From Bigelowiella natans CCMP2755 (Eukaryota > Protista > Cercozoa): a stretch of 39,045 nucleotides of DNA. How positions within the stretch are numbered: position 1 is the stretch's first letter; each line of letters opens with the position of its first letter. Made by a program: the position numbers and the translations under genes. The notes beneath the pieces were generated by a model. That model made no database searches. It was given only the letters and a program-made list of their open reading frames with translations, and was not told where the DNA came from. The stretch spans positions 1 through 39,045 of the forward strand of contig ADNK01003320.1 of assembly GCA_000320545.1 (NCBI GenBank). The letters are read 5' to 3'. Of this stretch, positions 4,690 through 32,942 are shown in pieces.

Positions 4690-5424
4690 GAAATCATCGG
4701 AAACCAGCGGCCCACATTTGACGATTTTCCACTGAAGTTCGCAGTTGAGATTTCCGTCTGCGCTCGGGAAAAGTTGGTCCGAAATCTGAGTTGCGACTGT
4801 GAAATCAAAACTGATGAACAAGCAAGAGAAGTAACCTTTTCAATGTCGAGTGGTTTCCTTCTCTTGCCGATCTCCTACCCCGGAAGAAGAAGGTGGGGTA
4901 GGGAAACTCACAACGAGAGAACATTGACAGTCCCCCCATCCTTGTGGGCAGACCTCATTTGGCGAGTTGTTGTTCTCCATGACATCTGCACATCGCAATG
5001 AACAGTGCTTTGCTTCCCCCTCCATCAATCCATCGACGTGGAGGCTGTTGAGCATCCGAAATCGGCAGCACAGCCAAACAGAGGAACCAGCTTGTCTGTG
5101 CACTGAATTAGACCCCAAATCTAGAGATTCCTGTTCGAATCCAGACAGTCGAAAGCATGTGTCGTGGTTCACAATTTGGGCCCGTGAGCAGAGCCATCTA
5201 GACGTGTGTTTGCACACCACGCTAGGACGCCCTGCTAGCCTAGCGCCTGCACCAAGCGCGCTGAACACAACCAAAAACTGTTCATGTGGAAGATTTTGTT
5301 ATTTGATTCGTGCACACATGCCGGCTGTGTTGCAGCACAGCTTCAACATCAGGTCGTAATGATGTCTTCAAATGAGAGCCAAATTCATCTGGGCTCATCC
5401 ATCAAGGTTTTGAAACGAATGACA
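4690..5424. other. TpA-depleted intergenic block with a small CTAG cluster, downstream of the kinase stop
   Basis: 4901-5424 has five CTAG (5121, 5198 and three in 5222-5243) and only three other TA. 4690-4831 has no TA. The flanking AT-rich DNA is TA-rich. Confidence 0.7.
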
Positions 5425-8079: not shown

Positions 8080-8730
8080 ATGTCGCAGGCAAGAAACACA
8101 CAGCATTTCAGTGCTTTTCCACCATGAACGCGATGCATTTTGTATCTCGAAATACGAGCGCTAGGGTTTGATATGGAAATCCCGTTAAGATGTTTGACAC
8201 ATGCAGAGATTTCCCTCGATGACCAAAATAACGGAAAGTCAGAATTCAAATGATGTCGCAATTAAGAACCATCACCCAATTCAGGTATTTTAGACCCATC
8301 GTACAGCAGTTTTGGTCAACTTAGTGCCATGGCAACAATGGCAACTTGCCGACGCTGTCGTTTTTACCCCGTTGTGGATGTGCAATAAGTTGTCGCGTTC
8401 ACGGAACGGATGGCATTTGCAAGGGCTGAAAGTTGAACTTCGAGCCTTCAAGTCGCGCAGTTCGTATCTCAGTACACATCGGACGGACAAAACGATCCGT
8501 ACTCCGACGGTGGCGCGCGATTTTCACATGTCGCAGAGGCAAAATTTCCTCCAATTTTATTGAGGGCGAAAAATTAGGACAGAATTCGGAACGGGTTGAC
8601 AAAATCTGCTCCGCCACAGAAACATCAGATTGTTGTTGACACGAGACTCTCAACGGAGGAGGGATAAGCAAGTATTCAGTGCCCCTTGCTCTTGATTAGT
8701 TAATGAATAAATCGTGAAGGAAAGAAGACA

Positions 8731-11700: not shown

Positions 11701-14700
11701 TATGTTAGGTTTATTCTGCCGGAAGCCAGTGAGGAGGTGATAAGTGATAAGGAGCATAGATTTAATCTTGGTATAAGATCCTTGATTGTAAAATAGGTGA
11801 ATATATCGGACAATTCAAAGCAAAGGATATCAAAGAACTGGCAAATGGTCTGTGTTATATCATTAGACATTGTATGCTCTACTTATTTTCCAAACTTCAA
11901 TGAAGATTAAGCGTAATAACTGCGTGGACCCTGCACTTTTTTTGAAAGCGGCGACAGAAACCCAATCAGTTCCGTACCTTTTATCTTATTTATCATTTTA
12001 CTTTGATGATCTAAAGAACGGTTATTGTTTTAAATGAATAAGATGATGCAAACGGATACCCTTCGACGATTCCATTCTTCAGATGAATATAGTTCTGCGA
12101 GAGAAATGAAGGAAGTAGTGTTTTCTTTGGCCAGAATCCCAGTATGATTGACAAAGTGACCCTTGTGTAAGTGTTTAGTTCGTCTTGCCCGCAAATTGCA
12201 ACAACCGCCTCCGATCGGAATTTACATTAGTGAGCAGTTTGATAAATATTCATTCCGAAGAAGGGAAACGTATAAAGGTTCTCAAGAGTCTAAGCAGTTA
12301 CCGAAAAAACGTGAATCATCTAAATAAATTCTTTCATAAAGGAATAGAAATAGAAAAATGGCTTCAAGGCGAAATTGACGGAAATCCTAGTAATAAGATA
12401 TTTTTCTCCCAGGAAAGATAATGGAATTTATACGAATATGTAGAGTGGAATTTAAAAGAAGGTAATTGAAACTTATGTGAAATGGTCATTAGGTATCGTA
12501 CTTGAGGGTGGAACAGCTGCAGAACTAGGAATCCTATTGCTGCAGCACCAATATTTGGAACCTCAGTGCGCAGGTGTTCAAGGTCATGGGTGGAATGCAC
12601 AAGGTATGATCGAATCTATGCTTTGTGTCTAAATACCATATATAATTACATAGTAGCACTAAATCAAGCGTTTCACTGAAACCTATACCTATTCGAATTG
12701 TCTTCTTTTAGGATATTATCGAGTAGCTCGGGGTGAGATTGTATCAGACAACCCTAAGAGGGGAAGATTTCGCGGGCGCGAAATAGATCTCAGTGAAATA
12801 GGAACCAGGGATAGCACGCGAAGACGAATAACGGAAGACTTAAAGGAAAATCTAAAAGAATCTATTAGCATAAGAGAATTAGGCATGGACAGATTTATTG
12901 CAGAATCGGAAATCAAGGCTAGACTTCTCTCAATCATGGATGGAGCTACCCTTGTGAACCGAATTTTGATCACGCCAAGATTGACATCAATCAACCTTTC
13001 CAATACAAATCTTGGGAGAGATACGTAAGTGCTGACCGCTAACTGCTTCTATGCTTCTATGCTTTGGGAAAAAGAGGTGCTTTCTAATGGAGCTTCTTTC
13101 ATTATATTTTGACATAGATATGTGGCACTATTCGTACTTCTTCGACATATGACTGACTTGAAGCAGTTACACCTTCGGCGTATCGGATGCAATGGTTTTT
13201 GTAAATACTTATTGTGCCATATTGGGTGAAGGCTTTACAGTTGTCTAACCACCTCAGGTGATGTACTTGTTGCACTTAGTGCTTTGATCCAATCCAGTTC
13301 TTCCCTGAGAGAAGTCGACTTAGGATTCAATGATATTGGAGTTAGAAACGATGAAAAGGAGCAATTTAGTGACGAAGGGGAGCCTCTGATTTTAGGAGCC
13401 ACTGTTCTGGGAGTTCTAAAAGATGGAAGAAACGATGAAGATGACACATCTAGCAATAGAGGGATACAGTCAGACACTTTCCATAAATCAGAAGAAGTGA
13501 AACTGGTCTTAGATCAATCTTCTCCTTCTCGAAGCCACGACAAATCCGCGTCACCAAGTACCATAGCTGATATTCTTCCTTCAGATTTGCAAGCATTGTT
13601 GAACGGAATTACAAAGTCGTCCAATTTGGAGAAACTTGATTTATCTCACAACAAATTGCGGTATATCTTCAACAATGTCATCCGATGAACTTTCTAATTT
13701 GTGTTGTGTGAACAGTAAAAACTTCTTCACAGAATTGGTAGACGGACTGGAGCGAAAATCAGGCCAGAATTCAGAGTCAAAATTTCAAACGGAAGCCGAA
13801 ACTATATTCTCTTGTGTCCTCTACGATCTCGATCTTACGTAATGACTACACGTGGTAGATTGCTTCTCAAATTTTAAGTAGTACAATTTCGGCAGTTACA
13901 ACCAGTACGATTTCACCGGAACAGAGATTGAGTCCCGACTATCGTCAATACTGCGAAAAAATAGGTTGTATCCCATTACTTGCTACTTGCCTTCTTCTCG
14001 AATATGACCGCTACATGTGTAACATAAGGGCCAATTTCAAACGGAAAAGTGTCATTGATGAAAAACGTATGAATAAAAGACATTCCACGGGAACATTTGC
14101 TCTAGAGGCGCTAGGTATTTGATATCTTGTTTTTTGAAATAGTTGAAACAGTGTGCTATGTCATGCTGATATAAAATTTAGGATCTGAGTTCGATGATTG
14201 GTCGTCCGAAGGGACGGGTAGCCAACGAAGCAATCATGGAAAATACCGAAGAAAAAGAATGGTGAAAGTTTCTATTACAATTTTCTGAAAACACTCACTC
14301 ATGTGTGAATTATAGACAATTGGAATGCGATCAACAAGAAGCCCTTCAATTTCTCCCACTTCCCGGCCAGGTAAGAGATATTCTATTGAACGATGTTTTC
14401 TGATATATGTAAATATGTGTATATTTAGGCTCGAGAGATGAGCACAGAAATTTTGCCTCTCGGTCCGTACCGGTAATCTAAATTACACTCAACGAACTGA
14501 AAGAGCAAATTCGGATTAGGATTGTTGTTATTTATCAATCAGAAGAGTAGTGTTAATATTAAGAATCGAGTGAACTCTCATTCAGAGCACTCCCAAAGTT
14601 TCCGAAAGAATTTCTCAGAAGGTAGCATAGGATTGCAGCCCACATTGATGAGCACACAGTTATGATGAATCTCGGCTTGAATACATTGTGTGAAGGGCCG

Positions 14701-15630
14701 GATCCAATCCAACAAAATAATAGAAATATTTCCCAACCATCTCCTCCGAATGCGTCGCCAATATCAATAACTCCTCCAGGTCTTCTCTTTAAAAGTATAA
14801 AGTTGAGTTTATTGTTTGAAAATGGATACCTAATATCATGAATCTTAAAAAGCAAATGAAGCTGATCCAACTGGCTCGAAAGAAACTAAAATAAAGGCAG
14901 TAACTACTAGTAAAATGAAACTTGAGGAAAAGCCGACCCCAAAACTTAAGCCATCATCAGAAGCAATAGAAGTGATTGAGAAGATAAAACCTACAAGCGA
15001 GGATTCTCGGATAAATGTTGCACCCTCAAAACCATATGGGGACCTGGTTGAGGGTAGGGAAGATTCATCGGAGAAAGTTAACGTTGCAAAAGAATTGAAA
15101 AAAGAAGACGATAAAAAAAGAATTATACCCAAGAATGTTGAAGGAGTGGAAAAGAATATTCCCCGGAAGCAAGAAGAGAATAGCAAAATAGGAAGGGGAG
15201 AAGCAAAGGAAGGAGAAATTCCCCAAGGAACTAAGAAAACTGAACTAGTAGATAACGAAAAACAACAACATAAGGCAAAGGAGAAGCCTGCAGTTGTAGC
15301 TAAGAGCCGTTCCATGACTGATATTGAAAAGTCTAAAGCTAAGAAGAAAATCCCGCCCCTTGCTAAAAGTCAGTATCCAAGTGATATATTGAATAATTAG
15401 GATTATTAAAATATTTGATATAATTTAGGAGACTCACTAGTTCTCAGTCGTGTTGCATTATATCAAGCACAGGTTAGTCGATCATCTAGTCGTACAAATC
15501 TGTTCCTAATCTCCTATTTGACTTTTGACGTATGCAGTTAAAGAAACTCGAGGTCTCAAGATCAAGGACTCCTAAGAAGAAGGTATTTAAAGTACTTCGA
15601 AGAGCTGATGGTGAAGTGTCTACCGTATGA
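8731..15630 (+). CDS. Large multidomain protein: N-terminal F-BAR(FCH), RGS-like domain, ribonuclease-inhibitor-type LRRs, charged low-complexity tail; dozens of short introns
   Basis: F-BAR: SRLAKARDQCKAISHIVRDWAAASETYAK|ALGKLS ... IMGLMERIDKKRIER ... EAIMQIDSTKDIQQFV (8904-10520). RGS: VFLNEDLKMMFRDFLES|ERSSENINLLDTNNEF (10876-11055) and FILPEASEE|VNISDNSKQRI (about 11710-11835). LRR: LTSINLSNTNLG, LKQLHLRRIG, LREVDLGFNDIG, LEKLDLSHNKL (12980-13660). The K/E-rich ORF 14915-15400 follows. The start (8731, donor GTATGT) and stop (15628-15630) are inferred. Confidence 0.75.
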
Positions 15631-15696
15631 ATATAATGGCAGATTCGCTTATTCCGGAGAAGTGCTACTATCGATGATGCAAAAGATAATTATAAA

Positions 15697-16380
15697 TTCG
15701 GATCCAAATCTCAAGACCCTGTTGATGTGAACGGTGCGGAATGATCAAGATGCCATTTGAGCATCATGCCACACATGATGAAAGAGTAGGTGCTATTTCA
15801 GACTTGCATGCAGTCGCTGCCATTTTGTCATCCCAGCCAAATGCAGTGAGGATGCATTGTCACAACCCAAAAGGTCCGAACACCAGCATTGTGTGTCCAT
15901 GTCTAGATGTGCACTACATGAAAGTGCCAGCCCTACCATGAGGGAGGGATTCGAATCCAATGCACATGAACCATTGATTGTTTGTGAATCGATCCAAAAT
16001 TGAGCCACAATGAAAGCTACAAAGCCTAGAAGGCTAGAAGGAGCACATCTAGACATGTGCACTCACCATCTAGCCATCCGCTAATCTAGTGATCTAGATG
16101 CTGTGCTGTGATGCTGACATCTAGACATGCATGCACGCGCGCACACGTCCTAGCTCTAGAGCTAACTTGCTAGCTAGCTAGGTAGCCGTAAAAAAATGTG
16201 AGGGTTCATCTCGTGCTAGCGTGTCCGTTGTCGCGCTCACCCTCCACTAGTCTAGCCCTGGCTAGCTGGACTAGTTGTCTATGGAGTGCACGTCCGCTCT
16301 GTCTGTCTAGCTCTAGAGCTGTTCTAGCTGTTGCGTGCACGCCGAGCGCAACACCCGCCTCTAGACCTGCAATCTAGCAA
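15697..16380. other. TpA-poor, extremely CTAG-rich block between two convergent gene ends
   Basis: 22 CTAG in 16026-16377. Most remaining TA are in CTA or TAG half-sites. Confidence 0.9.
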
Positions 16381-16458
16381 TGCTGGAATGCGTTGCAAGC
16401 TCCTATTTCTTCCATGCTGTTCATTTTGACTAACATGATCAAAGATCTACCCTTCTCG

Positions 16459-17882
16459 CTAATTTGATCCGCCGTCGACGCCATTGTTCGTACTGCGTCG
16501 ATCAAAACAAGCTCTAAATCTAGCCCTGTATGGATGTATTTCAGCGAACTGCTGATGTGGCAGATCAACATAAAGGTACACATTGGCTGCCGCGAGTCCC
16601 TCCTCCTCTGCAAGGGCAATGAGATTTAAGATCCTCATCCTGACGAGCGGGAACAGATCGGGATTGCAATGCAAAGCGCTCACCTCCTCCAAGTTCACTG
16701 CTACATATGGGAAAAGCTCCCCCCAGGCCCTATGCCTCGCAGTGAATTGCCGCGAAAAGACCTCCCTACCGCACGACCTCGTTGCTTTCGCAGGTTGCAA
16801 GAACTCGATGGCTGCTAAGTCGTCGAGCTTCGGGAGCTGCGACATGAACCGAAGCTCGGATGGGAGCACCTGCATCGAAAGTGCAAGTCACGAGTATCCG
16901 GGGGCTTCTCAAAAAGGATAGAGCTATACGTACGTAGTGTCAACAACACGAAAACTACGAGCGTTCATGAAATCAAAAAGTAATTCATCGGAAGGAAAAA
17001 GAGTGGCCGCGAAAATGCTTTCCTACACTGAGCGATAACCAACTGCTGTTTATTACCCTGAAGTTGTTCCACAAAAAAGCTCCCATGTCCGAATCATCGT
17101 GGAGGCAGATCGAACGAAATTTGCCGCTAATTCGTGAGAATGCAGCTACGAGGGGGTTTGACATTACAATGCATGTGCCCCCGCTCACATGGATGGTAGA
17201 TTTTGAGTACTTGTGTGCCGGATGCTCTGTGATTCCCACATAGCCTACCCTCCCCACCAGCGCCATCTCCGAGGAATTGTACAGATTGAGGGCCCTCAAT
17301 ATATTCCGGGGAAAAATGAACGCGTCTTCCGAACAGCGCAAATACCAGTCTGCAAGAGGGTTGGAGCGGTGTGCGAGCACGAAGGCCCTCTCGGTTTTGC
17401 AACAAACACCTTCCTCGTAGCTGTTCACCATGCAGCCGTCACGTTCCAGGCCCTTGAAGGACGTCGCATTTTTCACGCCCACGTAATTGATGAGGATGCT
17501 GCCGTCGTGAATTCCAGAGTTGAATCGTGAGAACGAGCTTCCAGCCCAACCACTCCGAAGCGTAGTATTCAGGGAAGCGAAGTCCTCTTCCATTGTTATG
17601 ATCGTGACGGAGAGTAATGTGGAGCGCTCTTTCCGTGAAGACTCAACCTTTGCATAGCTTCTTCGCACAGCTTTCTCATGTTGACTAGAATTAGAATCCC
17701 CCGACCTGCATCATGTTCGCGAGTTGGCGGAGCATGCAAACGGAAAGCGATGAGGAGAGGGCGAAGCTTCAACTTTACCTACCCCTCCCTACACACATGA
17801 AGGCACGCCACGCTTACCGAAGACACAACTGACAGAGAGCAAGAAACACCGTCAGCCCCACCCCGAGTACAACTTGCCGCAT
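16459..17882 (-). CDS. Type II membrane glycosyltransferase, GT31/fringe-like, about 374 aa, 3 exons
   Basis: Exons 17818-17882 (MRQVVLGVGLTVFLALCQLCL signal anchor), 17057-17705 and 16459-16869, phases consistent. Motifs ADWYLRCSEDAFIFPRNILRAL, SGGTCIVMS and HDDSDMGAFL match the fringe/C1GALT1 pattern (DWF..xDDDT, GG.G.V.S, EDV..G..L). Confidence 0.75.
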
Positions 17883-18489
17883 TGGATCTGTGTGAGAGCA
17901 CGCAACCTTCGTCGGGTTACATTCAGCTTGACAACACGTTGTTCCAGATTTAGGCACAATTTTACGGCTGAATACATCCCACAGTGAAAAGAAAATTGGT
18001 GCTTCATTGAGCCCATTTGCCCATTTGCAATGAATTGACATCCCAAAATTTCCGGTGTGCCGAGCGATTACGCAGTCACATCGAAGAAAAACTGTTCTTG
18101 CCAAACAACAACCCCACAACAACAGCCAGGGGCTCCTGCCAAAACGAGTCAGTATTCGGTAGCATGATTCACAACAGCAGTTCAAAAAGACATGACGTGT
18201 GCCATTTGTGCAAGAAAGCCGAGAATCTGCCATCAAATTGAACATTTTCAAGGCAATTTTTCACCATTCTTCCCGCAAATGAAGCCATTAGGTCCAAATT
18301 CCATGGAAAAAACTCGAGTGACCCTCTCGAGTTGCACCGGTGGCGTCACAACACGGCCAGGTTTTTTGCCTCGGAGCCACGAGGGTTGGTGACACGTTGG
18401 TCCTTGCAATGAGCATGTTGAGGCTCTGCTGAACGCACACGCCTGTCTCCCATGTGGTTCTGGCGCACGCAGATTTGATCAATGCTTTG

Positions 18490-18538
18490 TTCAATGTTCA
18501 ATGTTCAATGTTCAATGTTCAATGTTCAATGTTCAATG
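18490..18538 (+). repeat. (TTCAATG)n heptanucleotide tandem repeat, about 7 copies
   Basis: ttcaatgttcaatg... read directly. Degenerate versions occur at about 19780-19802 and 20737-20755. Confidence 0.9.
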
Positions 18539-18551
18539 CTCAGCTTTTGAA

Positions 18552-19753
18552 ACAATGAAACAATGAAACAATGATGAAAAACTGCATTTCCAAAGTGTGG
18601 CAAGACACTTGCAGTGTTTTGATTTTCCCAAATCTCAGCAGAGCGCAGCACCATTCTTGATTCCTTCTGGTTGTTTGGATTTCGCCGATGCGGCGCGATG
18701 CGGCAATGTGGGTGGGGGTTTGGTCACCTCCCACCCCTGAACCACATTCCTGGACACCGGTGGGATGGACAGACATGTCGCCCCAGCCACCGGTGACCAG
18801 GCAGCCAAACGAAGGACGTGTGGATCTGCACTCAAGATTCAAAGTCACATTCGGAAAAAAATTGGTGTGATGCGGCAATGGGCGGGGGGTTGGTCACCTC
18901 CCAACCCTGAACCACATTCCTGGTCACTGGTGGGGTGGACAGACTTGTCGCCCCAGCCACCGGTGACTTGGCAGCCAAGTGAAGGATGCATGGATCTGCA
19001 TTCAAGATTCAAAGTTGCATTCGCCGAAATGGCACTGGGTGGTGGGTTTTTCGGTTGCGAGGGTGGCTTTTCCCCTCATCCCCGCACCACATTCCTGTTC
19101 ACCGGTGGGGCAGGCCACCGGAGAATTGGATGCCAAGTGAAGGATTTTCGGATCTGTGTCCAACGTTCACCCCGGATGAATCCCGTCAGGATGAAGGTGT
19201 CCTCCTCAAACTTTGTGCCCTCCAGGCAATGTCTCCATTGGGCCGAGGATGTTGTGGTTGGCGTGAAGCCAGTGCTTCTGGTTGCAATGATGGGGGCTTT
19301 GTCTCCGCAAAAGCCGGGGATGTTGTGGTCATTGCGAAGCTCGCTGTCCAAATGGACTGGGAACGAAGAATGCATCCTCCTCCGTCTTCATGCCTTCCAG
19401 TGAGGGCAATGTCTCCGCAAAAGCTGGGGATGTTGTGGCAGGCATGAAGCAGACCACGAAGGTGTGGTCCATGGGATTGTTCTCTTGGGGTTCGCAGGTG
19501 TGGTGTTCTTGCTTGGTGATCTCCAAGCACGAGCAAACCATCACGACAGGATTTGGGGATGCGTGGTCCTGAAGTTGGCACTGAAAACAATGAAACTAGG
19601 AACGGAGGAGTGACTGCAATGCCATTCTTGATTCCTTTTGGTTTCACCAAATGGTCCTCACTGAAGTCAGTTCGAGGCACTGCGTTTCGTGCACTGCAAG
19701 TGTCTTGTTGCACTTTGGAAACGTGGTTCTTCATCATTGTTCATTGTTCATTG
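18552..19753. repeat. Inverted repeat pair of about 60 bp (18552-18616 and 19692-19753)
   Basis: caatgatgaaaaactgcatttccaaagtgtggcaagacacttgcagtg versus the reverse complement of the second arm, caatgatgaagaaccacgtttccaaagtgcaacaagacacttgcagtg. Confidence 0.85.
18697..19180 (+). repeat. Tandem repeat of about 170 bp (two good copies, one degenerate), with further copies at 20778-20950 and 30173-30355
   Basis: Shared core gatgcgg..ctgaaccacattcc..ccccagccaccggtgac..gccaa(g/a)(t/c)gaagga..gatctgca, with a 170-bp offset between copies 1 and 2. Confidence 0.9.
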
Positions 19754-21952
19754 CTCCGTGTGCAAGTCCCACGTGCTTTGTTCAGTGTTCAACGTTCACT
19801 GTCCACGAAGACACGTGTCTCCAACACCTTCTGTTTTCCTGTCAAGGAACGTCTGACATCAGTGACCGTTTTTTGTGTGGGGTCCGCGTTGGATTCTTCA
19901 ACGACACAACACGTCATCAAGCAAACCTGTCACATGCACAACAAACAATGAGCTGCTTGCTCAAACATTCAGCAGAAACTGCTCTCAGCTGCCCGTCGCG
20001 CAGTGCTGCCTGGCTCCCTGTTGAGACGGGCTGTTGAATCATGTCGTCGGTCCGTTCCAATGGCCAAAGTCACACCAAGTCGTCTGCACCAAACTGCCTC
20101 CGTTTCGTGTCTGAACAACCGAAACTGCGACTTGGCAACTGCTCCCAATGGAACGGGCCGATTGCCCAACTCGGCAACATCCATCACAACAATTGACTGG
20201 GATGTTTTGCTTGCTGCTGCATTCCCATGACGTGTGCGCTCATGTGAAATTGTTCCAACGGTCCGTCACCTTGTCTCTCGTCACCTGGCTGAACCTCGTG
20301 ACAAGGTGTCACCTTGCGTGTTTTTCCGTTCATGCCTTCACTCTGGCACTGGAAAAATTGCGCCTTGCCTTGGGTGCCACGTCTGGTGTTTCTTTGTTCG
20401 ACTGATGAAGAAATCGACAGGGCTTTCCGACGAACCATTGATCTGCTCGATGATTTCGCTGCTGTTCGCCAGTCTGGTTTTTCCCCACGCTGGCATGCTC
20501 CCAGTTTTTCCTTCCCCAGTCCTGACGCTGAGCTGTCAGAACTTGCCAGCTTGCCTGACAATTGACGGCTGTCAGCCTTCACTCACCTTCAACAGGGTGA
20601 TGACAAGTCCTTGCAATGACGTTTGTCGAGGCTCTGCTGCGTGCTCACCTGGCCATGCCAGCATGTCTGTCCAGCTGTCTCCCGCCGTGTGGTTCTGGCG
20701 CACGTGCTGCGTGGTTTTGATCAATGCAATGCTTTTTTCAGTGTTCCATGTTCAACACATGCACCCTGTTGGCGCGCGATGCGGTGATGGGCGGGGGGGG
20801 TTGAGTCACGAGGGTGGCTTTTCCTCCCATCCCTGAACCACATTCCAGTTTGCCGGTGGGACAGACAGACGTGTCGCCCCAGCCATCGGTGACTTGGTTG
20901 CCAAGTGAAGGATGTTTGAATCTGCATTGCAAACTTTTCCCGGATGAAGCCTTTGCTCAAAGCCCCACAGCCGTGCAAAGTTCGCGCGCTTCCACTCAAA
21001 ACATCAGAAATGCGTGATGTTTTCAAAACACGACGCACTTCTGAAAGCGCTCAAAGTGCGAGCCAGCTAGCCAGGCGCCCAGCTAGCCAGGAAGCAACGT
21101 GAAAATGACCGTCAATGAGAGTCACCATCAAGCACATCACTCGTTTGCACTTTTCGCACGTTTCTCGTGTGCACCAGTGCAGGGAACCTTCCAAGCAGCT
21201 TTGCCGCACCGCGCTCGCGTTCCAAGGCCAACCACGTGTTTTCGCCGAAACTTGAGCCAAAAAACAAAGAGTTCAAAGTGTTCAACTGGCAGTCATTTGC
21301 GGCATCTGGACGTGGTGAGAGCACTCAATTGCGCCATGTTTGAACGCCAAACTTCAAAAATTGAACGAGCCAGCTCGTTTTGCAGGCAAACGCTAGCACG
21401 TGAAGTGAGTGACGGAAACGTGTCAACATTGGAACACGCCAGCACGTCCCCAGCTAGCCAGCCATGCTAGCCAGCTGGCCAGCTGCGTTCAGCCACTCGC
21501 AATTTCTTTTTGAGGTGACACGTGCACAGGTGCATGTCCTCGCAATGCGTGTGCCGCCTTTGTCCTGCCGGCACCAGCTAGCCAGGGCATGCTAGCATGC
21601 CAGCTAGCCAGCATGGCACACCTAGACATGCACGTGTGTGTGTGTGTGTGTGTGTGTGTTGATGACGCACCGAAGTGCAATTCCAACAACAACACGTGCC
21701 AGCGACACCATGCTAGCAAGGCTAGCAAGAGCTTGCAATCGGTGCGCGCGCTTGCTAGCTTTTGCGCATCACGCCAGCATGAGTGAATGGCCAGGTGGAA
21801 GGGAAGCTGAATTCGCATCGTAATTCTTGAAGTGCCATCTCTGATGAAATCAAAGTCAGCACGTTCAAAAGTTGACATGCAGCAGTGCGACACACGAATT
21901 GGATCTTCGCCAGTTCGTGGTGCAAACCACAACTTGATCGAGCTAGCGAGGG

Positions 21953-24900
21953 CTAAATCACGACAGCATGACTCTTCTCTGAATCACGATTTCCTCCGAG
22001 ATTGCTGTCTGGGTTCCCAGGCGTGCCAATGACGACTTCAGGATTGATGCTCATGCTTCTCGGAATCAAAGTTGATCTGTCCGTCGCCGCCGAGGAAACT
22101 GAGGCACCGAAGCGCGTTCCAGCCGACATGGTTGAAGATGCCGTGTCGATTGCTGATCTGCCAAGCGCTTGGCTGCTGATGGGTCGCAACACAGTGGACG
22201 TCATGCGGATGCTGGCTCCGCTGGTCGCGCGACTTCCAATTGAAGTGCGGTCTGCATGCGCCTTGGTCAAGGACAAGGGCCGAACCTCGATTGCATCGAC
22301 GGTTTTCATCTCTTGTTCGAAGTGGCTCAGCTGAGCGTTGGGATTCGAGATGATCCTCGCCCTTCTGGGAGCACGACCTCTCCTGTGATTGCCATCTCCA
22401 TCCACAGTCCGCGAACCCCGGCTTGCAGAGCGCGATGACCGCTGTGGTCGCTCAGCCGATGATCTTCGCGATTGATGAAAGCCCTTGTTCTTGGTCGCTT
22501 TTTTCTGAGAGGGTTGGCAGCAAAGAAGGTTGCTTTCAGATTGCACTCGCTCAGTTGTGTGCCCTAGTGTGTTGTGTGTGCATGCGTGCATGATTGTGTG
22601 TCTTCTTAGGCCTTGGAGAGGGAAAATTACGAACCCAGTCGATGCAGTACATGGACAAGAAAAAAAACTTTTGAGGGTAAATGCGGGCTCAAGAGGGGAA
22701 GGAAGATTGCAACAGTCGAATGTGGTACGTTAATTGCATGGGAGATTCCATCCTTTGCGAACCAATGTATGGAGGAGAGAGCAGCGGCTTCGCAGAAGAT
22801 CGCGCATGCGTACAGGGCGTATCTTGTGGTGAGCGGAGCGAATCCACATGCGATGAAGAGGGCGCTCATTAACACCAGCGTTGAAGCAAACCACAAGAGA
22901 AATACTTGAAATTTCCTGATGTAATTTCGTGGTTCAAAGTAAAAGATGAATTAAAATGGAGAGACAAGGACGGGTACGGAGTTAGCACTGTTTTATGTTT
23001 TTGGCCAATCTTCTTCTTTTCATCAGGCTTGGGAGGGGGAAGTGTGAACTACGTTGCCACCCGACTATTTTTTTGCATCAGTGATTCTGTCAAAACAAAC
23101 ACCGTCATTCATGATGCTCATTTCCGATGACTTTAAAGATTGGCACCAATCACCATCAAGATCACATGTCTGACAACTCTCATTAAGCGCATCATCACTA
23201 TCACCACCACTTCCATCATCATAATCATGATTCAACGGCGTGTGTACTCCTAATTGTATTGAAGAGCCGGTAGCCGTAAATGTAGACAGCAACGATGATG
23301 ACTACGAACAACCCGACGAGAGCGCCCGTTGCAATAGTGACAGCGGAAGGATTATTATTTCGCCTCATGTAGCCGAAGAACAACAGGAAGATAACCCAGC
23401 AGGCCACAATAGCCGATACGGTGGACCAACAGTAGCACTTCTTAACCTGCTCAAACGGGGTTTTGGAAAGCCTCTTATTGTGAACGATGCTGATCCACTG
23501 GAAAACGAACGTCATGTACAGTGCCAACGAGAAGGTGTAGGGCAGGGCTAGAACGATAATCACGCCGCCAATGTGCACCGCCTCCGCTCCAAAGCCTGGG
23601 AGGATTTGCGCGATGAGCGCGAGGGAGGCAATCCGCACAACGCAAAGACCAAGCCCGATCACATGAGGCCCCCCGATGATTGAGAACACATCGATTCCTG
23701 CAAAGAGCAGGCGTAGTACTTGCACCGCGAAGACGAGTCCCAAGACAATGTAAACGCCAACGAGGGCGGAAAATATAGCTAAGGGCGGCTGTGGGGTGCT
23801 ATCCTGCTGCGAGCAGCCGTTAAGGTCAGAGAGGAGAGCGAACTCGGTAAGGTGGCGACAGCGGCAAATGCCTCTGCTGCTGTTGGTGCTCGAGGAAATA
23901 TATCTGCAGCCTGCAGTGCTCCAGATCTCTCTCTCGGTATCCCAAAACCGACACGACCGACGCAAAGCTTTCTCCTCGGGCGGAACTGGCCCGCATCTGT
24001 CACCATCTGGGGTGAGGGCCTCGAAGATGATGTCGACGACTCCGTCGGCGGCAGAATTTCTGCTGTAGTTGTTCCTGGACGTGAATATACTGTCCCCAGA
24101 AGAATTGTAGATGTTGATGGACACAACGGGCGAGAGGCGCCGTCGTTCCCCTCTCCTTGAGCTGTTGTCCACTCGCAAAGGACGGCACGTCGTGACATCA
24201 AGCTGAACCTCATTCATGCCTACGATGACCCGAGGGCGGACGGAAGATGCTGATGAGGCTGACGGGGACGCGAGTACGGAGACTGAGGACGTGCTCAACT
24301 CGGCCTTCTGGTCTGCAAAGGAGCTGCTCGTCGATGCTTGAAACGCGAAGCTTTGGTATCTAAGAGGCCCCGAGTTGGAGCCCGGGGGAATGACGCTTCC
24401 CGATGTCCTCAGTACTTCATCCATCTGCCGAATGGAGTCGTCCACGAGCGCACACGCGCCTCCTCGTCGGCCATTGCCATTGCGATTGCGCCGACTACCC
24501 GTGCTACTTCGTTGCCTCCCGGCGCTATGGTGTACTCCAAGCCCGCGCCTTAGCAGCTCCGATAGCACGACTGCGCAGCTCTGCCCAATGTCCCCAGCGA
24601 GATCCTCTGGGGAGGCGTACGAGATAACCTGTTGAACGGACGCGGACAAGCTATCGGCGCGCTCGATCGAGGCGTCGGAGAAGACTGGCGAGGTCGCAGC
24701 GGCCTCGAGAACCTGGATCACCAGAGCCTCCTCCCCATTCGCCATCTCTGCCTGCGACAGCACGGCAGTGACGAGATCATTCATCCTTTCCTCCACCACC
24801 GTCCATAGGCCCAACGAAAGATCCGATAAGCTCCCCGAGGAGCACTCCCCTCCTCGGAGCTCATTCGACTGGTCTTGGCAAGTGCTCGTCGCACGCGGGT

Positions 24901-30112: not shown

Positions 30113-31055
30113 AAGTTCTCCGTTCAAAAAAACTCGAGCGACCCTCTCGAGTTGCACCCTGCTTGGCGCGGCGATGCGGTGACGCGCGGGGGGGGGGCTC
30201 GGTCACGAGGGTGGCTTTTCCTCCTGTCCTGAACCACATTTCTGTTCACAGGTGGAACAGAATAGGCAGACGTTTCGTCCCAGCCACCGGTGACTCGGTT
30301 GCCAAATGAAGGATGTTTGGATCTGCATCGTGATGCGGTTTTTCTCGAGTGAAGCCTTCGTTCGATCGTGCGACTGCTGGACTGATTGTTGAATGCTGCT
30401 CGAATGGGTTCATCCCAAGCAGTTTTTACTCCCGAAAAACCTTTCCGTGTTTCCTCTCAGCCACAGTGTTTCGGTCACAAACTTCACAATTGACAACCAC
30501 CGATCGCACAAAGTCCAAAGGAAACGTGTGGACTGAAAACTCCACTCTGTTTGGTGTGAGCTTTGGGGAGGCATTTTGTGCGGCAGACGCAGCTGACAAT
30601 TGGACAATTGAACTCTGGAAACAGCAATCTGAGCAATCTAGCAATCTAGCAATGCAATTGAATCATCGAATGTGCAGCAGCAGTCCAGCTAGCCAGCACT
30701 AGCAGTGCACACACACACACACCTGGCATGCCAGCATGCTGCTAGCATGCTGATGCCGTGACCAACAGCACGCCACATCTAGACACGTCATTCTCTGTCT
30801 ACAATTAGATGAGATGGTCTAGCATGTGGCTGTGAGAGCATCTCTAATTGGCTAGATTTTTTAGTTGCCACGATGCGTGCCGAATGATGTGCTGCACATG
30901 GCCTCATCATCCCTCAGTAAGCACGCTAGCATGGTGTGCGCATGTTCAAAATTTACATCCAACATCGCAGTGACATTTTAATTTACGCTCTGCACGCATT
31001 TCTAGATGTTAGTAGGGTCCACTATCTCATGCGGGATGGTGCTATAGCTATCTAG
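30113..31055. other. TpA-depleted block ending in a CTAG cluster, downstream of the TPC gene
   Basis: 30113-30799 has only two non-CTAG TA (30263, 30427). About 11 CTAG lie in 30638-31055. Confidence 0.85.
30126..30365. mobile_element. Short non-autonomous repeat element (hairpin terminus plus one 170-bp unit); uninterrupted homologue of the element split at 18338/20760
   Basis: aaaaaactcgagcgaccctctcgagttgcacc matches 18307-18338 with 1 mismatch, and the continuation matches 20760-20958. Confidence 0.65.
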
Positions 31056-31126
31056 GCCATGTGTTTCCAAATTGTTAATCTTCAAGCACCTGAATCCGAT
31101 GATGTCGCCTTTCATGCTGATCACGG

Positions 31127-32942
31127 CTAGCAGAGTTCTATGTGTTGTTCCCAGGCGCATGCACTGCAATTGCTATCGAAGGAAAAATCGACTGGGTGTT
31201 GCTTTTCTTTACTTTCATCTTCTCCAACTTCTCCGCATCTTCTTTCGCGTGCTCGTCGTTCCCATCGTTAAGGCCATCATCCGAGGCGTACTGAACCAAA
31301 ACGGTCCCATCAAGAAAACGTGCGTTTCGAAATAAGTTGGGACCTCATCTAAATTGGGCCAGAAAAAGATATTCATGGTTCTTGTAATTTATAATTCAGT
31401 ACCTTAGAATCATAAACCAAGCCTTTTGTGACTTTTAGGAGCTCCTCGTCACGCAGGGCAGACTGCGCGCTCTCGACCTGCACACGATATCAAAGTGGGG
31501 GGGGGGGGGGGGGGAATGTGAGATAAATGTGGCAAAATGCAGTTCTTCCACGTGACGAGCAGCGACTACCATTACACCATACGAATTTAATCCTTTGCGA
31601 CAACTCGCAGATACGATATTCAACAATCAAAGATGTCTGATCATGAAATCAGTTGCCGCGATTTAAGCTAAAATGCGGGTGGGTCGTGGATGTTCTTCGG
31701 CGCGGTTACGAGTGTGTTCCGGCACAAAAATTGAAGAGCCTTGCAAGGAATGAAAGGCTCGAGACCCGAGGAGGATCCTCACCGTTTGGTATGCCCATGG
31801 CTCGACGCGAATGATCTTGAATAGCCCATCTCTCGTTCGGATTTTCCACGATTCTTCTTCCACGTACTTATAACGAAGAAGAAGCCATTCAGACACGATA
31901 TATCCATCAAGGTGCATATACACACGCGCGCACAATATTTAGATCTTACTGCTGCTAGCCCCAACCCCACCACCACCAAGGCTCACACATCGAGACGAAT
32001 GGCCCATAATGATGGGACAGTGTATACACACCTCCTGGTTTTTGCTGAAGCCTTGAATGATAAGCGCAGTGACAACGTTGAGTACCACCTGTCGTGTTGT
32101 TTTGGGGGGGGGGGGGGGGGAGGGGGGGATAAATTTTGTAAAGGTGAAATGATACGTGAGTAAGAACGGTCAACAACAATGGTTCCAAACACAATCCTCT
32201 TCTCTCTCTCAAGCCCTTGCGCTTACCATGCATACGATGAAGTAGAAGCTGACGAAGAACATACTGTATGCGAGCCTAAGAAAAAGAGTCATTTCATCCG
32301 AAAACACGGAGAATTAAGGGAACTTTACAGCAAAGACAGTCTGTTTTCCTAATGCCCCCCCCCCCCTCCTCCTCCTCCTCCTCCTCCCCTTCTACTTTAC
32401 CTTGTGTCAGGCAAGACGGTAAACATGACATCGTTCCAGTTATTCGTCGTTGTGATTTGGAATAACGAGAGAACAGCGGGCCAAAAACCTGGGATGTCGC
32501 CCGATTGGAATTTATTACAAAGCGGCACAATCTTCACGATAACCAACGTAAAGTGTCGGTATCTCTTGCGGTGGGTTTCTGCAGTAGCACATACCGTCAA
32601 ACGACTCGATCTTGTTGTATGGAAACTTTCCTAGGGCACGATAGCTGAACGTTTGTATACCTGTATAGTACATCAGGCGGTCGCGGGTTTAGATAAAAAG
32701 GAATAAGAGAGGAAGGGGGGAGGGGGGGCGAGGGGGAACGAGAACGACATGAATGCTCTTTAACAAATCGTAGGGAAACATATTCAATATGGGCATCTTC
32801 GATGCGTTCTCCCAATTCATTTCTCAGTATCTGTAAGGCAGCTCTCATATGGTGGTGCATACCGATAACGACAAATATGTAGAATATCACGAAGAGTAGG
32901 ACCAGAAGCCACAGCACTGTCTGCAGCGTCCTGTCAATACAC

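Follow-up and report, generated by a model that had tools for sequence, protein, structure and literature searches.

Footprints of Tc1/mariner-type elements, such as the TA-CWG-TA of Sleeping Beauty, consist of a few constant end bases that are flanked on either side by the duplicated target site and that derive from annealed donor overhangs. The elements piggyBac and Kolobok also leave a duplication of 4 bp, with TTAA as a fixed target, and the excision of piggyBac is seamless, without a footprint. Direct duplications of 2-4 bp that depend on topoisomerase II are found in yeast top2 mutants and in the cancer signature ID17; in these cases, fill-in of a break with a 4-nt stagger results in a direct duplication with no constant filler. 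More generally, a direct duplication of fixed length at a symmetric target indicates that a dimeric enzyme (transposase, integrase or nuclease) made a staggered cut.

In Bigelowiella natans, foreign DNA is subject to TpA-to-CpA/TpG hypermutation (Mettrop et al., bioRxiv 10.64898/2026.01.13.699255). Hypermutated DNA is delimited in that preprint by an observed-to-expected ratio (o/e) of at most 0.43 for TpA and of at least 1.52 for CpA+TpG (10.64898/2026.01.13.699255). The preprint describes substitutions, and mentions neither CTAG nor 8-bp insertions nor 3' UTRs (10.64898/2026.01.13.699255). Here, we analyse a stretch of 39,045 bases from this species, which we refer to as the window, and a dense CTAG cluster within it. 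We find that most of the CTAG in this cluster represents one stereotyped 8-bp insertion, which consists of CTAG and a copy of a 4-bp target (X4 becomes X4-CTAG-X4) and which we call a scar.

The CTAG cluster between two convergent genes

The main cluster (16026-16377, 352 bp) contains exactly 22 CTAG by direct count. The whole window contains 115, so that about 1.0 would be expected per 352 bp (Poisson P = 7e-22); the enrichment that had been noted in a first-pass annotation of the sequence, including its count of 22, is thus exact. That annotation had also described the cluster as something other than a simple tandem repeat. This is borne out by TRF, which detected just two tiny arrays inside the cluster (AAGGCTAG x2.5 and AGCT x6.8). 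As TRF is nearly empty and a search of the 91.4-Mb assembly with 15880-16460 returned no match other than the region itself, the main cluster is single-copy DNA, and both a tandem repeat and membership of a repeat family can be dismissed. A contig from a 2021 DNA run is identical to the reference across the main cluster and shows no 8-bp polymorphism there.

Some DNA contigs deviate from this arrangement. Run X2 yielded a contig that is identical to the reference and, in addition, contigs in which 15914 is joined to 16037, so that 122 bp are missing, and 16390 is joined to 16045 through 26 unrelated letters. Furthermore, the word depth over the cluster region at 15914-16391 is two to three times that of the flanks. 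These odd joins and the raised depth could reflect a rearranged second copy or allele that is missing from the assembly, or they could be unitig artefacts.

We used spliced RNA contigs to place the cluster relative to the two convergent genes. The plus-strand gene has twelve introns of 54-74 nt according to these contigs, and its stop was located by joining the exons that they define. The intron table gives the last intron as 15583-15642 (plus strand, GT..AG, 60 nt). The TGA at 15628-15630, which had been taken as the stop of this gene, lies within that intron, and the true stop is at 15742-15744. From this stop, the 3' UTR extends to 16107 (15742-16107, plus strand), with RNA contigs reaching 16044 and 16107; in the raw RNA reads of run X22, plus-strand coverage is zero after 16160. 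On the opposite strand, the stop of a Fringe-like gene had correctly been placed at 16459 (16459-16461), and stop and 3' UTR together occupy 16114-16461 (minus strand, spliced RNA contig). The spliced contig of this gene comprises 16114-16867 and 17055-17937 and encodes a product of 340 amino acids (P0001), with which a search retrieved one transcript contig of 1,235 nt that contains 13 nt of 3' UTR.

The transcript ends given by RNA contigs are approximate. The main cluster consists of two distal 3' UTRs, one from each convergent gene, that meet to within a few bases of one another, and it is transcribed. This agrees with the earlier observation that the densest cluster lies where two 3' ends meet. 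The introns of the plus-strand gene within 13661-15642 are of the GT..AG type with a weak 5' splice consensus; they have kept their TpA and contain no scars.

Three further clusters had been reported at 5121-5243, 21067-21946 and 30638-31055, and we recover them with 5, 13 and 11 CTAG. The small cluster at 5121-5243 lies in a TpA-poor bin downstream of a minus-strand kinase gene; it includes three scars in which three of the four flanking positions agree (3-of-4 scars). The cluster at 21067-21946, directly below the stop of a receptor gene, includes seven exact scars, mostly CCAG-CTAG-CCAG. The third cluster lies below a putative minus-strand ion-channel gene and contains 12 CTAG when followed to 31130 (30638-31130; 11 to 31055), with three exact scars, among them the tandem CAAT-CTAG-CAAT-CTAG-CAAT. 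The minus-strand orientation is verified for the kinase, the GPS receptor and the Fringe-like gene, and weakly so for the ion-channel gene (E = 0.003). All four clusters thus lie just past a stop in the window, as the first-pass annotation had it; however, the densest one is situated inside transcripts rather than downstream of them. Nor do the clusters all belong to one transposable-element family, which had been raised as an alternative: 21000-21960 and 30572-31200 have essentially only self-matches in the assembly, and the clusters are single-copy. Directly adjoining the cluster at 30638-31130 is a repeat of about 170 bp (30400-30571) with at least 10 copies elsewhere.

As a contrast region, we considered the head-to-head spacer at 8080-8730, which contains one CTAG and no scar. 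The absence of a cluster from this spacer had been recognised before, but the accompanying claim that it keeps its TA applies solely in comparison with the clusters: at 0.48, its TpA o/e is below the window mean of 0.71, and the clusters have 0.02-0.44 when CTAG is set aside. Genome-wide, triplets of closely spaced CTAG (CTAG-N0-12-CTAG-N0-12-CTAG) occur 15,617 times per strand and 1,441 times in a reversed control, a 10.8-fold difference.

An 8-bp insertion with a symmetric target

By comparing the flanks of each CTAG, we found that about 10-12 of the 22 CTAG in the main cluster are exact X4-CTAG-X4 scars (16034, 16049, 16070, 16121, 16156, 16174, 16216, 16262, 16313 and 16374) and that seven belong to 3-of-4 scars. 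An outlying exact scar, ATGT-CTAG-ATGT, is found around 15903 in the 3' UTR of the plus-strand gene (15899-15910). When exact and one-mismatch scars are peeled out of 15890-16400, 16 units are removed, which account for 25% of the DNA there, and only five of the 23 CTAG are left.

Across the window, 21 of the 115 CTAG are exact scars, compared to 0.45 expected (0.4% by chance; binomial P = 1e-28), and all 21 lie within or beside clusters. The same signal is present in 20 loci that were drawn blindly from other contigs (121 kb), where 45 of 301 CTAG are exact scars (P = 1e-55). After the removal of simple repeats, identical 4-mers flank 13.5% of CTAG cores, compared to a background of 0.79%, and no other tetranucleotide comes close. 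Variant footprints with other core lengths and sequences did not rise above background. Extrapolating from 45 scars in 121 kb, the genome would contain tens of thousands of scars, about 34,000. One of the 20 loci (L020) carries a (CCCTAA)n telomere repeat at the start of its 31-kb contig (4-255) and a scar-rich island at 8114-8633.

Single scar words can also be counted in the whole genome. The word ACATCTAGACAT has 1,733 occurrences, spread over many contigs, compared to 10 of its control, whereas GACACTAGGACA, a word of equal composition that violates the target rule described below, has 42, compared to 9 of its control. A search for two different scars in a span of 30 nt gave 52 matches in this genome and none in the control; the two-scar signature had no match in a metagenome collection. 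We found no paper that describes CTAG scars, and a literature search on CTAG footprints and on elements with a 4-bp duplication yielded nothing relevant.

Insertion can be followed in the copies of a high-copy repeat family, one of which lies at 18549-19756. We aligned 12 copies of this repeat as a paralogue set in which filled and empty sites and the decay of CTAG can be compared. Copy L027 reads GGC-ACTG-CTAG-ACTG-GGT, whereas seven other copies read GGC-ACTG-GGT. A second 8-bp CTAG insertion is present in copy L030, at a site that itself derives from CTAG, and these two are the only private 8-bp insertions in the alignment. At the level of aligned paralogues, a difference of exactly 8 bp between filled and empty sites is direct evidence of insertion.

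The repeat itself, with copies also at L022-L032, is about 1.1 kb long and has a constant right end at 19753-19759. A 65-bp module at 18551-18617 recurs in inverted orientation at 19690-19756 and also inserts alone (51 bp in L030). The DNA word depth at 18549-19756 is 100-250 times that of single-copy DNA. RNA reads with a loose poly(T) end before 18478 point to the end of a polyadenylated minus-strand transcript.

The 66 exact scars from the window and the other loci reveal a symmetric target. The first base of X4 is A or C in 91% and the last base is G or T in 91%, and the outer bases are C or G in about 70%, which gives the rule S|MNNK|S. Favoured targets are CTAG, CATG, CCAG, AGCT and CAAT. 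Furthermore, 26 of the 66 scars adjoin another CTAG or have CTAG itself as X4. Among 3-of-4 scars, mismatches between the two X4 copies are of the TpA type in 16 of 73 cases, compared to 53 of 610 (P = 0.001), although this excess says little, as the majority of these mismatches are transversions or chance matches.

These observations bear on the possibility that the clusters are decayed (CTAG)n or (X4CTAG)n microsatellites that grew by replication slippage. In line with slippage, CTAGCTAG is 17-fold over expectation, and short runs exist, such as the CAAT run mentioned above. Yet most scars are single units with differing X4 in unique contexts, and hardly any tandem array is found in the main cluster. 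Slippage would produce neither the MNNK rule nor the 40-fold difference between ACAT and GACA scars, and we thus regard a microsatellite origin as scarcely credible.

TpA erosion and the decay of CTAG

The scars are concentrated in DNA that has lost its TpA. Per 500-bp bin, we counted 0.94 scars at a TpA o/e below 0.45 (calculated with CTAG set aside) and 0.075 at an o/e of at least 0.6, i.e. scars are about 12 times denser in eroded DNA. The most strongly affected region of the window is a TpA-erased island of repeat copies at 17900-22300 (TpA o/e 0-0.04, CpA+TpG o/e 1.5-1.6), which includes the cluster at 21067-21946. Both 18001-22000 (TpA o/e 0.00-0.10, CpA+TpG 1.53-1.62) and the cluster at 21067-21946 (TpA o/e 0.29, or 0.02 without CTAG; CpA+TpG 1.64) fall within the cut-offs of the preprint. 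The 3' UTRs of the main cluster (15700-16458) are borderline, with a TpA o/e of 0.26 without CTAG and a CpA+TpG o/e of 1.47.

The island spans 4.4 kb between two tandem minus-strand genes and has long ORFs in all frames because its TAA and TAG stops have been erased. A classifier based on ORFs and codon usage, which we tried for gene orientation in the 20 loci, was misled by such TpA-erased DNA without TAA and TAG stops and by tiny exons, and it was dropped.

The scar cores decay by the same type of change. Among core variants, CCAG (3.2%) and CTGG (2.1%) exceed the other one-step neighbours, which remain at background level (0.4-1.6%). At ancestral CTAG sites in the repeat alignment, most copies have CCAG or CTGG and some have CTAG. 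As only these two cores exceed the background and CTAG is ancestral in the repeats, the direction of change is from CTAG to CCAG or CTGG. This contradicts the proposal in the first-pass annotation that CTAG is a mutational sink fed by CCAG and CTGG, which are here the derived states.

Despite this decay, CTAG persists longer than TpA in other contexts and is thus partly resistant to the TpA mutator. In the repeat copies, TpA is retained in 47% of cases within CTAG (at three sites only), in 10% within one-sided contexts and in 2% elsewhere. Likewise, of the 206 de novo TpA mutations of the viral region in Table S2 of the preprint, a hand count places 20 in a TAG-equivalent context, compared to about 23% expected (10.64898/2026.01.13.699255). 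A modifying enzyme at CTAG, as had been suggested, is not needed for the enrichment and could play a role only in this partial resistance.

The resistance raises the question of whether sparing alone could be the cause, such that CTAG merely survives TpA-to-CpA/TpG hypermutation and nothing is inserted. TpA does survive much more often within CTAG than elsewhere, fewer hits than expected fall on the TAG context in the mutation-accumulation data, and CTAG makes up 13 of the 14 TpA in 21067-21946. Sparing cannot, however, lift CTAG 20-fold over expectation, nor can it yield identical flanking 4-mers or paralogues that differ by 8 bp. Sparing is thus a real contributor but is refuted as the sole cause, and that it acted without insertion is extremely improbable.

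We further considered that CTAG is a cis-element under selection, for example one that directs termination or polyadenylation, marks a chromatin boundary or is recognised by a base-modifying enzyme; termination, boundaries and modification are among the readings of the first-pass annotation. The clusters do lie at gene 3' ends, both convergent transcripts end inside the densest one (with approximate ends), and the palindrome CTAG would serve both strands. Against this reading, the target-site duplications show that the CTAG arrived by insertion, and the same scars are present in repeat copies that are dead and lie nowhere near a 3' end. Moreover, the scar cores decay with no sign of purifying selection, and the size and spacing of the clusters are irregular. 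Nothing supports a termination or boundary signal, as the duplications mark insertions and the CTAG lie inside transcripts. We thus consider a selected element very unlikely, while a secondary co-option of scars as cis-elements is possible.

Besides the CTAG scars, the data contain insertions of a different kind. In Table S2 of the preprint, seven of 13 de novo insertions end in ACA (10.64898/2026.01.13.699255). These are +ACA, +GACA, +CAACA, +ACACA, +CATTACA and two of 11 bp, and the table also lists a multi-base change TGGC>AACA (10.64898/2026.01.13.699255). Our repeat alignment contains a private +AACA and two private 11-bp insertions. Insertions ending in ACA may represent a second stereotyped class.

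Origin of the scars and comparison with known systems

With moderate confidence, we interpret the clusters as piles of 8-bp insertions that accumulated in unconstrained TpA-eroded DNA, here the distal 3' UTRs, and that are the remnants of transposons. A dimeric enzyme would cut with a 4-nt stagger at MNNK sites, and the constant CTAG would be what is left of the two ends of a mobile element after its departure. Excision footprints are normally heterogeneous, whereas the scar observed here is uniform. Because of this uniformity, we propose that the element ends carry self-complementary CTAG overhangs (or CTA/TAG overhangs that overlap by TA), which probably anneal and are ligated without processing. 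Since the duplicated 4-mers are preceded by G and followed by C and since CTAG is a preferred target, each scar makes new targets. In this way, G|X4, X4|C and the CTAG core would serve as new half-targets, and scars would seed further scars. This feedback, together with the tolerance of insertions in 3' UTRs, would generate the clusters, and the visible enrichment would result from repeated insertion combined with the slower loss of CTAG compared to other TpA.

Our search for a parent element was negative within the following scope. A scan of 160 kb for inverted-repeat elements of the forms CT..AG, CTA..TAG and CTAG..CTAG with a 4-bp duplication returned only noise. A Pfam search of the genome detected no DDE_3 (Tc1), mariner or piggyBac domains and, for DDE_1, only two pogo-like ORFs. 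No superfamily is known to us in which a 4-bp duplication of variable sequence goes together with CTAG as the remnant. Among 21 de novo indels from the published mutation-accumulation lines (3,132 line-generations; 10.64898/2026.01.13.699255), none is a scar. With about 34,000 scars and 5-10% neutral divergence, the long-term average would be roughly 3e-4 new scars per genome per generation and about one would be expected in these lines, so that this absence is weak evidence.

The two pogo-like DDE_1 matches (G000:C2661:202080-202535 and G000:C2845:6046-6501) lie in stop-free frames of 600 and 543 amino acids and are possibly intact or domesticated. The abundant repeat at 18.5-19.8 kb was considered as a parent and rejected, as it ends in ...TTGTTCATT and not in CTAG.

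A serious rival to the transposon-remnant reading is a nuclease route that involves no transposon. A host or viral nuclease would introduce 4-nt staggered breaks at MNNK in TpA-hypermutated, convergently transcribed chromatin, and repair would fill in the ends and add CTAG from a fixed source. The enzyme and the TpA mutator could, for example, both belong to one system of genome defence. This route would fit the uniformity of the scars, their tight co-location with TpA-eroded DNA and the outcome of the 160-kb scan and the domain searches for a parent. In addition, a 4-nt stagger is typical of type II topoisomerases, which are active between convergent genes. On the other hand, we know of no repair route that adds a constant tetranucleotide. 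Plain X4X4 duplications, the expected by-product of fill-in, show no excess of MNNK (2.5x, compared to 2.7x for KNNM). On balance, we doubt that a nuclease alone produced the scars.

A more speculative version combines both arms into one defence. A novel cut-and-rejoin system, which might be a defence nuclease of the host or might be a mobile element of a new class whose CTAG ends are self-complementary, would be aimed at TpA-hypermutated chromatin, such that the DNA there is mutated as well as cut out and the record of this is written in the 3' ends of thousands of genes. We regard such a two-armed defence as unlikely.

Irrespective of their source, the scars record the cutting rule of an enzyme, namely a 4-nt stagger at S|MNNK|S, and they account for the 'palindrome-rich' 3' intergenic DNA of Bigelowiella natans. 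As young TpA sites of known ancestral sequence, they can be used as an internal clock and to assay the context dependence of the TpA mutator. For annotation, they serve as a warning that a high density of CTAG, GCTAGC or TCTAGA should not be mistaken for regulatory information. Should the source prove to be a transposon of a new type or a nuclease with a role in defence, it might also be of interest as a tool with clean and predictable junctions.

When comparing the scars to described systems, we find the closest likeness in Tc1/mariner footprints, which share the constant remnant between duplicated target copies and the symmetric target. In contrast to these footprints, the target here comprises four variable bases (MNNK) instead of TA, and the remnant is the palindrome CTAG and is uniform. 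Furthermore, there are tens of thousands of scars, and neither resident copies nor a Tc1/mariner transposase were seen here. The duplication length of 4 bp is shared with piggyBac and Kolobok; however, the target is variable here, and the piggyBac domain was not found in the genome. Unlike topoisomerase II-dependent duplications, the scars contain an added constant CTAG, and the plain X4X4 duplications of this genome are without MNNK bias. Base J of kinetoplastids is likewise located at the ends of convergent transcription units, but it is a base modification without insertion of sequence, and the pattern observed here can, as far as the sequence goes, be explained without a modification of this kind. 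The TpA hypermutation of Bigelowiella natans affects the same DNA, and the scar cores decay by exactly the change that it introduces. The two processes nonetheless act in opposite directions, as TpA is gained with each scar and lost through the mutator.
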